From NCBI GenBank assembly GCA_037447605.1, contig CM074819.1, positions 2,221,580 to 2,285,579 of the forward strand: DNA of 64,000 bases, given 5' to 3'. Both the position numbers and the translations under genes were made by a program. Below, piece by piece: positions 21,090-31,093 of the stretch; positions within the stretch are counted from its first letter, which is position 1, and the number at the start of each line of letters is the position of its first letter. Source of the DNA: Zygnema circumcarinatum SAG 698-1b (lineage: Eukaryota > Plantae > Zygnematophyceae). The notes under the pieces were generated by a model. That model ran no database searches and had not been told where the DNA came from. It saw nothing but the letters and a program-made list of their open reading frames with translations.

Positions 21090-21205
21090 TTGGGGTTTTA
21101 GCGTTTGAGGGTTTCTAAGGTTTTGGGTTTTAGGGTCTTTAGGGTTTCTAAGGATTTAGGGTTTTAGCATTTTTTAGGGTCTCTAAGGTTTAGGATTTTA
21201 GGGTT
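21090..21205. repeat. Degenerate (T)nAGGG telomere-like array
   Basis: ttttaggg/tttaggg/tttctaagg units. Similar arrays at 26518-26548, 36590-36662, 43205-43340 and 50090-50160. Confidence 0.75.
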
Positions 21206-21691
21206 GGTAAACAAAAACTGTCACATTTCAATGGCAGCATTTGCTGCTTGCCCGGCCCTGCCCTGTTCCACATAACATTATGGCAATGCAAGCTCATGTG
21301 AGAGATCGGGTGGAAATTGCAGCTTTTACCAGAAGGAAGAAGAAACATGGAGCGGCAAAGTGCGAGCGTTGCAGCATCAGATGGCAACGACGGCATCCGT
21401 GTAAAAAATGTGCTGACTTCTTCTATAAACAAGCTTTTACATTTGCATCTCCCAACCCAACATCTCGACAACTTGCTCAGAAACAAACTCAGTTGACTGC
21501 AGATTTTAGCCTGCCTGCCTATCTGCCTGCTTTCCTGCCTGCCTCACTCCCTCTGTGCTTGCTTCCCTGCCTCCCTGCTTCTCTCTTTGCTTGCTTTCTT
21601 GCCTGCCTGCCTGCCATTGGAAGCTTTGCGTTGTGCCTTAGGCTTGGGCTTGGCCTTGTACTAGGCCCTCCCTGTATGGAGTCACGGCTGC

Positions 21692-24600
21692 TCAGTCCTT
21701 GACGGCGACGATGTCGACCATGACCGGCTGCCCCAAAGCAGTCCTCAGCGCCTTAGAGAGGTGCTTGGAGTGGTCGTCCTTTCGGAACACATCCACAAAC
21801 TTTGCCGCCGTTCCTATGCGCACGAAATAGCCCTCCCCGGTAGAGCTGACTGACAGGAGGGAGCCCTATAAATGGAGAGGAGACAGCAGGAGGAGGGCAC
21901 GCCGAGGTCAGGAATGCGCATGAAATCGTACAACCACTCTTCACCAGTTGGGTCTTAGTCTCTGCCAAAACCAACAGGCACAATCTCCTCCTCTCATCAT
22001 AGAAATAGTGAAGCTTTAAGAGGAGTTATAGAGAGAGTTCCATTCATACCTTCTGGCGAGTAAGAGCTTGAGTCGTTCGGCTCTCCAACATAGCACATGT
22101 TTCCTCCCAGATGTCCTTCAACTGCTCCTCTTTCCTGTCATTCTCTGAAGGGGGCAGCCCAGACTCGCCGGCGTTGCAGCCGCCATCACCACCCCCTTCC
22201 CTCCCACTCGAATTTCCGCTTCCCAAGCTTGGTAAGCCACTTTCCAGCTCCCCCCTGGCAAGATCTGCCATCCTTTCTTGGACCCACTTCGGAAGCGAGG
22301 CTATGTCCTCGGAGCTGAGAATCTCCCTAGTATGCGAACGCTTTCCTAACTTCAATTCATAGTCGAGCTCGGAGACCCAATCTGACGTGAGTTCTTGTGG
22401 CCCAAAGTGGCAATAAATCATATTTGCCCAGTTTTTGGAGTCAGATACAAGGTGGTGTAAAAGGGGAGAACGGGAGGCTGCCAACGTAAGGGGACGATTC
22501 AAACTGACAATGTAATCAAGAGTCGCGGAAAGAGCTGCCTTCGTTTGAAGTCCCTCGGGCACCTCAAGGTCGTCTAGAAGCACCAATGACCTCCCAGTAG
22601 CGTCCTTTGCTATGTCTGATAACTGCTGCAACTGTTCTTTGAAAGAGATTCCGCTAGAAAAAGGTTTGCCAGAGGTCTTCGGACTCACCATGATGGAGTC
22701 TGCAATACCCACTGATGCCCAATAAGCAGGGACGAAGGACCCCATTTGCGCCATCACTTGAATTTGGCCGATTTGGGAAAGGTAACAGGTTTTTCCGCTA
22801 TGACGAGGTCCCACTAGAAGCAGCGTACTTGACAACGGCCATTTTCTTCTTTCATCTTCGACTTTCCTGACAACCTTCCTCTCCGCTTCTGCTTCTCCTG
22901 CTGCCTCCACTCGCTCCGTTGGGGCTATGCTGCAACTACCGCTCTCCACTCTCTCCTCTCCCTGCAAAACTTCCTCCTCCGTTTTTGAATCAATCTTCGT
23001 GTCACTCTTAGGCTTCTTCAAGACCTCGACTCCGGGCAACCGTTCGTCATTACTCCGAGTACTTAGAAAAATTGAGTTGTGGACAAAAGGTTGACCTTCT
23101 GGCAGCGCTGCCTCGACAGATGGATGCCATCCAAGGAACACAGAAAGGCTGTAATCTTCCGTTATACGGGGCCGCACGTACCCTCTCTCTGCTGCTACTT
23201 CTGCTTCGTTTCACAACCCACGCGAAGAGAAATGAGCCGTTTCACTTACACTTCCATTACACTTCGGAGAATCATCGGAGTTCTTATGAATGAGTTCTAA
23301 TGGACATTGGAGATCCTTGGAACCTTGAATACTTCAAGAATTCCAGTAATTGACAGGGTGAAATATACTGTCGGAAAAGCCTTCGGAAGAGTGGCTCCTA
23401 ACACATAGAAACCTTTCCAACATCTAGAAGCTTTTAAAAGACAAGAGAAAAACATACGGAACTTTGGGAACTGCAGAAACTGCAAAAAACTTGCCAACCT
23501 TCGAAATTAGACAAACTTAAAACAACCCAAAACCAAAAGTCGGTTTCAGGATTGCAGGCTTACCTGCAAAACTTGCCAGTACGTCTATCTCTGCCAGAGC
23601 CTCTCCCATCTCCCAGAGCAGCTCCACCTTCTCTCCCAAAACCACTTTAAGCTTCAGTGCAGCATCTGTGGCTTTGAAATTTCCACTCCCATTTAGTTCT
23701 TCCACTTGTCTATGGTAGCCATAAGTGTCCGACTCATTCGCTCGAAATCCTTCACTCTTCTGCACATGCCAAGAAAGAATGTATTGGGATTCTACACTCT
23801 TCTTAACTATGCAGAAACATCAAATGCATTCGACAGGCTCGTCCTCCCCCTCCCGGTAGATGACGATTGTTCGGGGTACAGTACAAAAGTTCTATGGCTT
23901 CGCAATTTTGAATATTCTACCGTTTGAGCCTATTCATGGTTACGAGGTCCCCTTTCCTAGAAGAATAACAATTACCAGCTGCCCTTCAAGAAGCGACGAT
24001 AGTAGTATGCTTTTGGAGAGAAGTCCTTCTGGCAAAATTCCTTTTTGTGCGGCCTCCAGTAATACTCCCGAGCCTTCAGAATGGCCCGACCCTCTTCCGA
24101 CTACAGTCGCCACACTGCTTGCGAGGGCAATAAGCTCTCTGTACCCTCCTCTGAATGAATGATCAGGACTGAGAAACGTGGAGGGAAGTGGGAGAGAATT
24201 GAGAGGAGGTCGTGGAGGGCGAAGAGAATGAAAAGAACGAGAAAGAGAGAAGGGGGAGTGAGGGGGAAAAGGAGGAGGAAGAAAGGAGAGGAGGAATTGG
24301 GAGGAGAAACGGGTAGGAGAAAATTGGGAAAGAGGAGAGCAGGGGAGACGGAGGAATTCCAGGAAAGAGCAGGGAGCAGACGATGAGAGGGGAATGAAGA
24401 CGAGGTAGTTTTCAGCAATTCACATTCTTAACTTATATTCAACGGTCTACAATGTAAACCTATGTGACGGGCGCACTGCAACCTACCCAGCATCCGCCAT
24501 ATTCCAAGCGAGCCGAGAGGTGAGCTTCTGTATGTCTGCCAAGCGGCTGAGCTGCTCTCTGATCGATTCACGCAGACTGTGGGCAACGGTCAGAGCCTGC

Positions 24601-27600
24601 AATAGAGGTAGCAGCTCAGTAAATTTTGTCAAAACAAGGTCATTCGGGGTTTTAAGATTGAAGGAGACGATGTTTGATGTTTTCAGCTCACAATGATCTG
24701 CAATGTTATCAGCGAAGGCATGGAGGGTGGGATCGGGGATGAATCGGGTCACGAATGGCGCTAGGTACAGCTAAAGCTAGAATTGAAACAAACTCAAGTT
24801 CTGAAACCAAACGTAGATTTCAAAACTGAAATCGAGCAAGAGAATTTTCGAGTGTAGCATTTAGCATTTGCGACCCTGTTGTTGCCCTTTCTTAGATCCA
24901 TTTTTTCACAGATTTACAATTTTAGAATTTTGACTTCCGGACTCTTAAGCTTCTGACGGAGCTCCTTTGTACTACGGCACTGATCTGACGAGAGGAGAGG
25001 CGAAAGGCGACCTCTACTGCATCATGGCGGCGCAGCAAAGTCTGCATATCGCAGGAGGGTTGGAGCAGCCATTGCCGCAGTTTGCGCGTTCCCATTGTGG
25101 TCATTGTGCGGTTCAAAGCGGTCTGCAGGCTGGAGGATGGGCCGCGAGGAAACTCCACCAACTGCCATAAAGGAAGAAGGGGTATAAAGCAAGATGGGAT
25201 TGGAGGATGGTAGAGGTTTTTTTCGTTTCAGGAGTTGGGGTTTAATAATTGTAATTGTTTTGGGGTACGAAAAAGAAGGGTCGATAGGAGAGCTTACGGT
25301 CGCTTTATGCAGTTCTGTAAATCCACACTTTCAGATTGACAGTATTTGTGGTTTTTTGTACGACTGACGGGTGGAATGCTCCTCGGAACAACCTATAGGC
25401 CACAATAAAATAATAATACTAATACGGGTTCAATAACTTTTGTAGCAGGACGCATACCTCAAGGAAGGACACAGTGTCAGGGTTCAACTGAAGGGCAGAC
25501 TTCGCGTCATAAAACCGCGGTCGTTGTAGAAGGGCTCGACTTGATGCTTGCACATTCTTATCTTGAACATAACTGCATAGGAGGGAGACAGAAAGGGTAA
25601 GAGCGAGAGAGTGAGAGAAGAGAGAGAAGGAAGAAAAGGAACAATAGGGAAGGGGCGGGACTGGGAGGGAGGGAGGGAGGGAGGGAGGGAGGGAGGGAGG
25701 GGGGGAGGGAGGAAGAGACAGGGGAAAAAGGTATATCTTAACATGGCAAGTGCAGTGGAAACCTGGAAAGCCTGGACTCAGTGAGCAAATACTCAAAAAC
25801 CCCAAAACGGTGATGCCCCAAACTTCCACCCCCCTCCATGGAAGCAGAAAGAAACGCACACCAAGAGGGTGGCGGCTCCTCTCGCAGAGAGATGTCCTCC
25901 CTTTGGACCTCCCCAGAAAGGTTGCTGCGTGTCCGCCGGAGACCCCTGCTCCATAGAGCAGCTAATCACCCATTCAGGAGACCGGTAATGAAAAAGGAAA
26001 AGGCTAGTGAAAAAGGCACATGGCCTATATAAGGTTCGGAAGTTCATAGTTTTTTAAGCTTCGAGATTCTCCTTAATGGTAGAGGCCCACATGCGCCTCT
26101 CGAATCTTCATGATTAGGTATCATCAGGCATCCATGAACACCGACGCAAAGTTCAGTTATTTCTCTCGTAAGGATGACTTTAAGGTAGAAAGCGTGTTTT
26201 TTAGAGCTTTCGAGACTTTCTTACTTGAAATTTATTGGGTTTTTGAAGTTTTGACCGTACCTCAGAAACAAGTGAAACTCTGCGTTGGACATCGTTTTGC
26301 TGATTTATACTCCTCCACAAAGAAACAGCTTCAGTAGTTGCCATTTCCTGCACATTGAACCAATGTGCAGAGCTTCCCGTCACCACTAGACAGTGCCTTT
26401 CTCTCCCCTTGTGGGTGTTTCATTAGTAAGGTGAACACTCAGGAATATCCCACTTTCATATAACTAAGATTAGTATGGGGCTCTCGAATAGTGCTATTTA
26501 GGCTAATAGAGTCGTCCAAAAACCCTAAAAACCCTAAAAACCCTAAAATGTACCTGAGAGACTAGTAACAGCTCCGCCGGATTCAGTCGAAGAATCTCAT
26601 CGCGCAAGGCCTCCTCCCCCTCCACTTCAGTCGCCCAAAACTCACCTGCTCCACCATGCAAATATCGTTCCCAAGCCATTCACTCATTCCACTCATTACT
26701 GTCTCATCCAAATTCACTGAATTCATTCCCTCCCACCGCCCCCCCCTCTCTCTCTCGCTCTCACTCTCCACCCCACACCCCGCCCTACACCACCCCGGCG
26801 ATCAAGTCAAGGCTCTCGATCTCGCCAATCCCCTTCTCATCTCTCTTTCCTGCCTCCTCCTCCGTCGTCTCCTTCTGCATCTCCCTCTCTCTGCTCTTCT
26901 CTTCCCCAATCTCGCCCGCGACTACATCCTTTCTCCTCTCCTTTGCACCTCTCCTCCCAGAGTCCGGCCTATCCCAACATCTCTCACAATCATCCGCGTT
27001 GATCCGCCAGAGGGCCAAATACTGAAGGAGCTGATCTCAGTGGGCAAGAAAAAAAAGTTAAATCTTCTAAAATCGTGAAGCAAAGATAAGTATTTTTCTT
27101 AGAAAATATACGGTTTCGCTAGTTCAGTGCTACTCTGCCTCTTTCTGGATGCCGCCTCTGAACCACTCACCTGTTGACACGTCAGCATAGGCGAGTCCGT
27201 ACTTGTCGCAGCCCTCTTCTGACTTCACAATACTGACCAAGAAGTTGTTTGACCCTGAAGGCAACGTTATGGGGTCCAGCGTGGTGCCAGGTGTCAGCAC
27301 GCTAGTGGCCTGCCATCTTGACTCTCCATGACCAGTCCCTACATCCATCTGCAAGTCACAACGAAGGATAGGGTCAACTACAGAAGGGACACTTGTCAGC
27401 CTTAGCCCCAAACTAGCTTTGACAAAATAAGATGAAAATAGAGAAAATAGAAAAGAAAAAAAGGAAAAGGATTTAAAACCCTCGGGTTACGCTAGTTACT
27501 TCTTTAAAGAGGCCAATTGAAAACCCTTGCCCCAACAGGAAGGGAATTGACCGCTCGATTTCGCTGCAGGGAGCCGCTGCTATAGGAGCCACCTTGGCTG

Positions 27601-30600
27601 CCTGAAGGGATAGCCATGGCGAAGATGAATGGTAAAAAACAGGCCATGTAGACCAGGGCCACATTCGAACCCAGAAACCCGCAAAGCATGAAAACAAGGG
27701 AAAAAAAAGGGACTCTACGCGCAACCGACTTACCTCCCCACCAATTCTTCTTGTGAACTGCTCTGCACTTATCCCGGTTGCTAGAACGTCTGCGTCCTCA
27801 AAGTATGCCTGCAGGGAAAGAGAACTTTGCATGTGTGACAGACTATTCACAAACAGTAACATTCTTCATTTCTTAGAGTTTTGATGTGCCAGATTCACAA
27901 AACAGCAAACGTAAGGCGATGAGAATTCTACCTTAGTTTAGGCCTGAGAATATGTACCTCGTAGGAGTCCCCATTCTGAAAAAGCAGCAGGTAGTCCGGC
28001 CGCTCCTTTTTCGCAGTTAGCCATGCCCTGAACTCTGGTCTGAGGCCAACTGCCTCCTCCTCCACATATGCGCTATCTGCCATCTCCTCCAACTCTCTCG
28101 CTCCGCTCTCATCTTCACGTCCCACTTCTTCGCTTGCTCTCTCCCCCACAGTCCGAGCAGCGGGAGATACGGCCGCTTCTCTTCTTCTCCTGCCTGCTTC
28201 TACGCTTACCTGCTCGGTTGCCAGAGGATTCCATCCCCTGTCTGCTGCATCCTCATCAAACATCCATTTTTCAACATCATTTGACTCGTCCCGTCTGGGC
28301 AATTCATCTTGACTGGAAAATGCTTCCCTTAGATCTCTTCCAGTTAAGGTATCCTTCACATTGAAAACCGGGAAACCAGTCTCTCCATAATGAAGGCCAA
28401 GTGAGCCTTCGATAGCGTCGTCTGCAACCTTTCCTCCTCGTGACGAACCATTTACCGTTTCCTTATTGGCTAGCTCATTTTCTTCACTGAGAACGAAACC
28501 TCTAGTTGTACCCTCAATTGCCCCTGCATGCCTTCCCCTACCCGCAGATTCTTCCGCTTCTCGGGTTTCTTGCAGGTCTTGGAAAAGAGGCATTTCAAAT
28601 CGCTTCGTTCTTTGGGCATCTCTCGCTAATTCTTGGTGGCTCGGAGGCCTCTTCTTCGATTCGGGATTCCCATCAGCACCAAATGTGTAGCGACATAACG
28701 ACTCTAAAGGAAGCTTCGAATTTTCCAGCCAGAAGTTTATAACGTCAAGCAGCATAAGGACATCCGGGCCTGCTCGATGCGCAGCCGGACGAGACGGAAG
28801 GCCATAGTGGCTATGTAGAGTGGCGAGCTTGAGGTTCTTTGGACCTGCCAAATGAGCTGCAGCACAGGGAATACATAGATATGGTTCACAGCCACGCTGA
28901 CTGTCTTAACGTATCTTGCTCAAAGGAGAATCTTAAAATCCTACAGGAAATGACAATTTATTAACACGATGTCCGAACTGTTGTGGGTTCACGACCAGGG
29001 GGCTTGAGGAAGGAAAAGAGCTATGAATGTGAATTGGGAAGAAACGCAAAGGATAGAGGAGGGAGAGGAAAGGGGAAGAAAGAAAGAAAAGATAAGCACC
29101 TAGAGACTTCGGATGCAGTACCCTGCCCAGCACAAGCGTATCCAAGAACAGCCAATTGGAGGGCATGATGATCTTGTAGCGTTCAAACTCGCGTTTCAAA
29201 ACCGGGACATCAAACGTTTGTCCGTTGTGCGCAGCCAATACAATTGGAACATCGCTCTGTCGTCGGCTTTCCACAAAGTCTATGAAGGCCCGCCCCACCA
29301 CCGCCCAGCTGACACCCAAATCGACGGTCAAGCGTCTCCAATAGAGGTGCGGAAAGCCTTTCAAACAGAAAGGAAACAACACAAGGCCTGGCATAGTGGG
29401 ACAGCATATAAAAGCTTTCGTATTCGACTCTGATCCTAGTTTTCATGACGTCGGGTGCGTATTTTACAAGTTTATTGTACCTCAGGTCATGCATTTATAT
29501 GCCTAATGCTTCAAGAAGACAAGGATGATAAGTCGTTGAGGGGTTCAACAACAATTCAAGAAGATCCTATGTAGGTAACTCCATATTGTCTCCCTAGTGG
29601 ACTTCAATCAAATTGGATGTTCATTGTCACTAAACAGCATGCATTGCCACAGAAAGGTTGCGAATCCGTTAGTACTTATACTTCCTCCCCTTTCTACTAT
29701 TCCCATAGTGCACACAACCTCCCCAACCCCATACCAGCCAATACACCCTCACCCTCACGCTCAACGTGCAGTTTTCGCGCGGCTTGTGTCTCCAGCACAT
29801 GGGCTGCTACATGAACTCACGAAGTGGCCCTTGTCGCGTACAGACGAAACCACTCATGGCAGTTTGGCGTGTCTTCTCATGAAGCATATGCTGACCTTTT
29901 TTAATGCAATCACGGCTTCTGCACTGCATTCATGCGCATAGCACTCACTCGGGAACGTCGGGCCGACAGACATCGTTGGTGTAGATATTGTTCGATCTTG
30001 ACGCCCCGAGAGGAACAGGCACTCTCGGATTAACAAGCGACTCCATGCTGCTGAACGGCCCCCCCGTTCTATCTCTTGCCGCCACCTCGATAATGCGGTC
30101 GCTCGAGCCGAGTCCCGTGGTTTCCAAATCAAACCCTATCAACACCAATGGGGGCTTGTCTCCACCTGTCAACGATTCAACTCCGGAGTGCAGTGAAGCA
30201 TTCAAGCCTGACTTCCAATGTTTCCCCCTTCCTGCATGGCCATAGGCATGGGGTATTCGGTCATCTGAAATTCGCCAGGATGGCGGAGCTGCCAGTTGGC
30301 TACATCGCCATTCCCGCCGTTGACTTCTCAAATGCTCCGAAATCGATAAGTTCGGCGTTCCAAAAATCATTTTTTTTTCAGGTTCTCTGACGCAATGTTG
30401 AAAATAGGAGGCGTTGTTTGTGGAAATTGTGGGAGAATATGGATAGAATGTCGGCATGAGAGAAGTGGTGGGCAAGGCAGGAGAGTAAGCTGAGAGCAGC
30501 AACCGCCTATCAACTGTTGTCATTTGGCTATATCTTTGTACCCTCCGCATTTTATTCAACTTCAGCGTATACCTGCTCTTCGAAGCGCAATACAAACTCC

Positions 30601-30790
30601 AAATCCCAATACTAGAGCACGCCGTGGAATATACATGAGGCATTTGCAGGGGCAAGACACCACCCCTTTTGACAAGCTTCTTCTGACTGGAGAGAGTAGA
30701 ATTCCGTAGCACAGCAGGTGCTGTGCCACAGTGACATCCATGGCGTCCATACGAGGCCAACATACCCTCCCTTCCCCCACAATTCCACAT
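21692..30790 (-). CDS. Fusion of a DPD1-like DEDDh 3'-5' exonuclease, a bacterial-type MutS (domains I, II, III, V; degenerate) and a DnaX/STICHEL-like C-terminal domain; probably organelle-targeted
   Basis: Exons: start (ATG 30790 or 30550) to 29949 (ExoI FDLETTG); 29308-29100 (ExoII AHNGQTFD, NWLFLDTL); 28844-27958 (ExoIII HRAGPD plus MutS-I KKERPDYLLLFQNGDSYE); 27808-27734; 27601-27500; 27348-about 27171 (VLTPGT...YGLAYADVSTG); 1-3 unresolved exons at 27.1-25.9 kb; 25572-25458; 25161-25012 (LNRTMTTMGTRKLRQWLLQP); 24596-24487; 24138-23976; 23759-23564 (LAEIDVLASFA); 23188-22050 (GPRHSGKT, MAQMGSFVPA, LVLLDD); 21865-21692. All resolved junctions are GT-AG and phase-consistent. Confidence 0.88.
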
Positions 30791-31093
30791 AAGCAATGTG
30801 ATGCGGAGCCAGCCTGCAGCAGCTCATGCCTCCTGCAAGCGCCTCTGCAGGGCCCTGCAGGAGATGGCCGCGTTCCCCCCCGAGGGACAAGGCTGAGCAG
30901 GTGTCGGTGCCGTACGGCACTACCACTTACGCCGGTTTCAGTTCCACAAACTCAGTTTTTGACGTGTGAACTTTCCTTGTTGTCAACGGTAGACGCACAT
31001 ACAAACCAGGATGGAGGAAGGCGCACATACAAACCAGGCTGGAGGTTTTTCTTTTTGTAGGGTTTTAAGAAAGGTTTTTTGAAAATTAGGGTC

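Follow-up and report, generated by a model that had tools for sequence, protein, structure and literature searches.

A fusion of a DPD1-type exonuclease to the cyanobacterial-like MutS1 of plants has been described in Viridiplantae, and only the exonuclease and MutS domains are annotated in the green-lineage proteins (Sloan et al. 2024, Plant Cell, PMC12292046). The text of that paper contains no occurrence of DnaX, STICHEL, DnaA or tau, neither it nor the domain maps place a C-terminal domain on the green-lineage proteins, and a 2026 preprint on MSH1 makes no mention of such a domain. The gene considered here lies on the minus strand of a 64,000-nucleotide stretch of Zygnema circumcarinatum SAG 698-1b (GCA_037447605.1, contig CM074819.1, positions 2,221,580 to 2,285,579), which we call the window and from whose first letter all coordinates are counted. 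Judged by its translated exons it is the algal ortholog of the DPD1-MutS1 fusion, of the organelle type: it has the same N-terminal DEDDh exonuclease followed by MutS domains I, II, III and V in the same order, and it is collinear with the proteins of Riccia, Marchantia, ferns and a lycophyte that are the best whole-library matches of the window exon, but it differs from them in being very divergent and in having altered ATPase motifs. While the protein family is known, neither the literature that could be searched nor the precomputed annotations describe its terminal domain. We report that a small last exon is spliced onto this gene, that it completes a C-terminal domain of about 85 residues assignable to the STICHEL family PF23007, and that this tail is most likely a docking or self-association module.

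An earlier note on this DNA had proposed that a donor at 22050 and an acceptor at 21865, in phase 0, join a hidden last exon to the gene, and the transcript contigs bear this out. The layout of the gene, to which the following paragraphs refer, is:

21330..21691, minus strand: 3' untranslated region; contigs stop at positions from 21330 to 21516
21692..21865, minus strand: last coding exon, encoding the beta-beta-alpha-alpha-beta half of the C-terminal domain; from spliced contigs
21866..22049, minus strand: last intron, 184 nt, GT..AG, phase 0, with an in-frame Val-TGA at 22049-22044; skipped in four runs
22050..22142, minus strand: end of the penultimate exon, encoding the two N-terminal helices of the domain (L..IW...L...TQAL.RQK); from PF23007 and the ortholog profile
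22050..23200, minus strand: penultimate exon; from transcript joints (22050/21865 and 23200/23564) and the open frame
22143..22280, minus strand: low-complexity linker rich in Gly, Ser and acidic residues, connecting MutS domain V to the terminal domain; from the translation
22281..22820, minus strand: MutS domain V (ATPase), divergent; Pfam MutS_V, 4e-17, residues 120-299 of 22050-23177
22224..30148, minus strand: rest of the gene, with the DEDDh (DPD1/RNase_T-type) exonuclease and MutS I-III and V; from Pfam and tblastn

On the minus strand the donor reads AAG (22052-22050) followed by GTATGA (22049-22044), and the acceptor TTTATAG (to 21866) followed by GGC (21865-21863). Unspliced read-through from 22050 would add a single Val before the TGA at 22046-22044, and an in-frame TAG at the acceptor (21868-21866) closes the frame of the last exon upstream (six-frame segment 21695-21865). 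The last exon comprises 57 codons and the TGA at 21694-21692, and the translations of both exons match the peptides quoted in the earlier note. Of eight public runs listed for one organism, five contain the stretch, and contigs from four runs of two studies, none of them labelled as RNA, were aligned to 21201-27200. In every one of the four a single contig, at a depth of 118-394, omits exactly 21866-22049 and joins 22050 to 21865; the skipped 184 bases read CT..AC on the plus strand, that is, GT..AG on the strand of the gene. In all four, bin 21801-22000 reaches exactly its exonic share of the exon depth (0.32), and therefore no aligned contig in these runs retains the last intron. Moreover, each of the ten joints between 21201 and 27200 shows GT..AG on the minus strand, indicating that the contigs derive from spliced RNA, although isoform ratios are not derivable from them. 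The last small exon is thus confirmed as spliced on, and the transcript does not end at the in-intron TGA (22044). Upstream introns (23175-23593 and others) are covered by contigs of low depth (about 4-45, where the spliced contigs reach about 60-390) and the last intron by none; these low-depth contigs point to pre-mRNA or DNA carried over in the runs.

The two coding pieces on either side of the last intron were searched separately, exon by exon, against Pfam. Family PF23007 ("STICHEL, DnaA_N-like alpha-beta domain", DnaA_N-like_STI; 86 profile positions, gathering cut-off 27 bits) was the sole family matched by the last exon (positions 34-84, 13.1 bits, E 0.11), and the same family was matched by the end of the penultimate exon, beside MutS_V (positions 3-32, 16.1 bits, E 0.012). 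The pieces are collinear on the profile and together cover nearly all of it, as do the orthologs (6-85). Scanned alone, the domains of six orthologs all match PF23007 and no related family (best E 2.5e-7), that of Riccia (P0021:1770-1864) with 29.2 bits against the cut-off of 27. The 2,356 six-frame segments of the window were then all scanned with a profile built from these six ortholog domains only. The top score went to the last exon (28.5 bits, E 1.8e-7, positions 33-88), followed by the end of the penultimate exon (15.7 bits, E 0.0018, positions 3-32), while the next segment scored 8.8 bits. Among 185 proteins the same profile matched the plant MutS1 group alone; not one of the approximately 130 bacterial MutS proteins in this set was hit. 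On these sequence comparisons, the terminal domain of the exonuclease-MutS1 protein is assigned to PF23007, the C-terminal domain of STICHEL/DnaX-like proteins.

Other searches bounded this assignment. NCBIfam gave no match for either exon piece, and neither the last exon nor the ortholog profile found a match among the sequences of the PDB. In Pfam the six ortholog domains showed no sequence-level match to PF20964 or PF12170, and DnaA_N was matched by neither the exon pieces nor the six ortholog domains at E up to 10. The clamp-loader AAA+ module (PF13177, PF12169, PF22608) found no match on the exons of the gene or on the orthologs, the core being MutS, and therefore the terminal domain is all that this protein has in common with DnaX and STICHEL. 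Scanning bacterial and archaeal genomes with patterns from the ortholog alignment returned 223 pattern matches, none of which was confirmed, so that a direct bacterial donor cannot be named. A protein-atlas feature search with the last exon listed PF23007 and DnaX_C at only 0.86, which we treat as a lead rather than as evidence.

An exhaustive library search with the 383-residue exon returned no close relative (best match 107 bits, 36% identity), the top matches being long eukaryotic proteins. Two of these (P0021 and P0022) carry an RNase_T exonuclease, then MutS I-V and then a C-terminal PF23007, and two partial proteins (P0018 and P0020) carry MutS domains with the same C-terminal match. The orthologs include those of Riccia sorocarpa (P0021), Marchantia polymorpha (P0186), Diphasiastrum complanatum (P0018), Ceratopteris richardii (P0023) and Adiantum capillus-veneris (P0078), as well as several more from Logan assemblies. 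The name that the Marchantia protein bears at NCBI, "DNA polymerase III subunit epsilon", derives from the DEDDh domain and is misleading. Word-index protein searches were uninformative, given length limits and few shared words: the 383-residue exon retrieved only bacterial MutS fragments, residues 650-742 of P0018 only themselves, and residues 1770-1864 of P0021 themselves and the Marchantia ortholog.

Across eight orthologs the tail forms one conserved block of about 85 residues with 26 invariant columns (alignments A1 and A3). The two window pieces occupy columns 9-40 and 41-97 of A3 and meet between QK and G with no gap and no overlap, and the sole invariant Gly is that of this QKG junction. 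The window copy keeps 15 of the 26 invariant residues and shows conservative changes at four; the Trp of the first helix is invariant in all orthologs and present in the window. The terminal domain is therefore conserved from the alga to ferns.

The intron that divides the domain is old, and its position is conserved beyond the window gene. In a Logan assembly of SRR33208250 (L001, 2873-4928) the same phase-0 intron, here 277 nt long with a TTGCAG acceptor, splits the domain; prokaryote-style gene calling on this contig gives a truncated product of 508 residues and a separate call of 111 residues with the last exon, and P0169, a protein of 2,027 residues in the same cluster as L001, is the spliced form. 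Two ORF-style calls on genomic contigs (P0019 and P0041) end at profile position 32 (...KQKV and ...KRKVR), as the read-through in the window does. The Pfam annotation precomputed for the Riccia and Marchantia proteins does not include PF23007, and in full-length Pfam scans the family falls just below the threshold. The domain has thus gone unannotated because gene models halve it at the conserved intron and because full-length scans just miss it.

The fold of the Riccia domain (P0021:1770-1864) was modeled with AlphaFold2, using the alignment of six sequences. The model (mean pLDDT 85.5) has the order helix-helix-strand-strand-helix-helix-strand and is predicted to be an alpha/beta fold like that of DnaA domain I. 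The last exon of the window, folded alone with the ortholog alignment, gave strand-strand-helix-helix-strand at a pLDDT of 89.2, and a fold search with this half-domain did not separate DnaA domain I from other KH-like folds. For the Riccia domain the best neighbor in the ESM Atlas was a streptophyte STICHEL-like cluster with DNA_pol3_delta2 and PF23007 (TM 0.85, rmsd 1.9 Å over 91 residues), followed by DnaX of Bacillota (TM 0.80) and of cyanobacteria (TM 0.79), DnaA (TM 0.76-0.79), a cyanobacterial PF23007 protein (TM 0.76) and a DnaX_C cluster (TM 0.75). The closest solved structure was DnaA domain I (Helicobacter pylori, score 7.8; Escherichia coli N-terminal domain, 6.9), with DciA at 6.6-8.1, the C-terminal domain of E. 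coli tau also matched (5fku_E, 6.9; 2aya, 6.8) and type II KH domains at about 7. In these models, then, the domain has the fold common to DnaA domain I, the N-terminal domain of DciA and E. coli tau domain V.

The likeness to each of these proteins has its limits. STICHEL and STICHEL-like proteins (DnaX-like; PF13177 with PF23007) carry the same family in the same C-terminal position, but have a clamp-loader-type AAA+ module where the window protein has an exonuclease and MutS, and STICHEL is known as a regulator of trichome branching and not as an organelle repair protein. The C-terminus of bacterial DnaX (PF20964; E. coli tau domain V, 2AYA and 5FKU chain E) differs in that no sequence match to PF20964 or PF12170 was found, and in that tau binds Pol III alpha, which is not known in plant organelles. 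From DnaA domain I (4TPS, 2WP0, 2E0G) and the DciA N-terminal domain (8A3V, 7YKM) the tail is separated by an identity of about 10% and by location: it is C-terminal in a repair enzyme, where those domains are N-terminal in an initiator or loader. The DnaX/STICHEL-like pattern that the earlier note had recognized is recovered as PF23007 in both exon pieces and six ortholog domains, and profile and structure searches both returned a DnaX/STICHEL-like match. As to the epsilon-like and tau-like parts that it had envisaged around MutS, the former corresponds to the DPD1 DEDDh exonuclease already known from plant MutS1, while the latter holds for the terminal domain in a protein from which the DnaX AAA+ clamp-loader module is absent.

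Upstream of the tail, the open reading frame pieces match RNase_T (on the frame 29948-30796), MutS_I, MutS_II and MutS_III in Pfam, and tblastn with P0021, P0169 and P0022 finds the gene collinear with the land-plant proteins from 30148 to 22224. The exonuclease region is 43-50% identical to those of the orthologs in these alignments, and the exon with domain V 27.9-30.3%, the window copy being very divergent. The linker between MutS_V, which ends at residue 299 of a 376-residue frame, and PF23007 matches no family. The exonuclease motifs DLETTG, AHNGQTFD and HRAGPD seem intact in the frame pieces (27928-30796, minus strand), and thus the nuclease may be active even if the MutS ATPase is inactive. 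In domain V (22281-22820, minus strand) Walker A is kept (GPRHSGKT), but LLDDLEVPEG and ASRS take the places of LLDEVGRGTS and STHY, respectively, in the L001 ortholog.

A repeat and a low-complexity tract were also seen in the gene. An intron contains, at 26519-26548 beside the exon 26553-26639, three to four copies of AAAACCCT, which on the minus strand reads TTTTAGGG, the telomere unit of the Chlamydomonas type; contig depth jumps there to 1,700-2,700 with many loose ends, which indicates a repeat common to many transcribed loci. The 3' untranslated region holds a long low-complexity tract of GCAGGCAGG / AAGCAAGC at 21500-21640.

Given that the solved members of this fold, as far as we know, all bind partner proteins at the replication machinery, it is reasonable to infer that the tail of the algal DPD1-MutS1 is most likely a module for docking or self-association. 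DnaA domain I binds SirA and HobA, DciA binds DnaB, and tau domain V binds Pol III alpha. The last two exons, joined across the conserved phase-0 intron, encode an alpha-alpha-beta-beta-alpha-alpha-beta domain of about 85 residues, tethered after MutS domain V by the flexible, low-complexity Gly/Ser-rich linker; the tail would recruit the exonuclease-MutS1 enzyme to a partner in the organelle, or serve in its assembly, and could replace the clamp-binding and tetramerization tail of bacterial MutS. Several observations weigh against this proposal. Each window piece alone lies below the PF23007 cut-off of 27 bits, and the window copy is the most divergent of those aligned: it differs non-conservatively at seven invariant columns and lacks the Pro that is otherwise constant in the PAT motif. 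The ATPase motifs of the window protein look degenerate, and it may therefore not be a canonical mismatch sensor. Plant organelles are not, to our knowledge, known to use a DnaX/Pol III-type replisome, and so the partner cannot be the bacterial one; nor do we know of a function for the C-terminal domain of STICHEL itself.

A narrower proposal is that the domain serves mainly in homo-oligomerization, replacing the lost tetramerization helix-loop-helix of bacterial MutS and having no link to other replication proteins. DnaA domain I, the closest solved fold, self-associates through its first helix (Trp6 in E. coli DnaA), a Trp is invariant in the first helix of the orthologs and present in the window, and none of the approximately 130 bacterial MutS proteins among the nearest matches carries the domain. 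However, in tau domain V and DciA this fold makes contacts with other proteins, and self-association is compatible with the docking or self-association module proposed above rather than exclusive of it; a mainly homo-oligomeric role is the less likely reading. More doubtful is a bolder version, in which the tail was captured from the endosymbiont DnaX/tau lineage, the source of STICHEL, and couples the exonuclease-MutS1 to the organellar replicative polymerase or helicase; we hold this to be improbable. Slightly less probable still is a KH-like nucleic-acid-binding module providing extra grip on single-stranded DNA or RNA: type II KH domains are among the structural matches, but the loop between the paired helices has no GxxG and indeed no Gly, the six ortholog domains match no KH profile, and DnaA domain I is a clearly better structural match, making this reading less likely than docking or self-association. 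Finally, that the protein ends at the in-intron TGA, with a chance-open frame and a spurious weak match downstream, might be argued from the sub-threshold Pfam matches (E 0.012 and 0.11) and from runs that are not on record as RNA, but it is very improbable and already contradicted by the spliced contigs in four runs with their ten canonical introns, by two collinear half-matches to one profile, by orthologs that carry the domain uninterrupted, and by the same intron in the L001 genome with its spliced form on record as P0169.

The cyanobacterial-like MutS1 of plants and algae has no known function, and a conserved domain of the DnaA-I/tau-V/STICHEL type, which ORF-style and some automated gene models halve at a conserved intron, offers a concrete and testable handle on it. 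The terminal domain could reveal the means by which the enzyme is recruited in organelles lacking the beta clamp and MutL. Were the tail in fact captured from the endosymbiont DnaX/tau lineage, unlikely as we consider this, plastids or mitochondria of the green lineage would possess an "epsilon-MutS-tau" hybrid moving with the replication fork, and mismatch sensing and 3'-5' excision would be linked to replication without a beta clamp or MutL.
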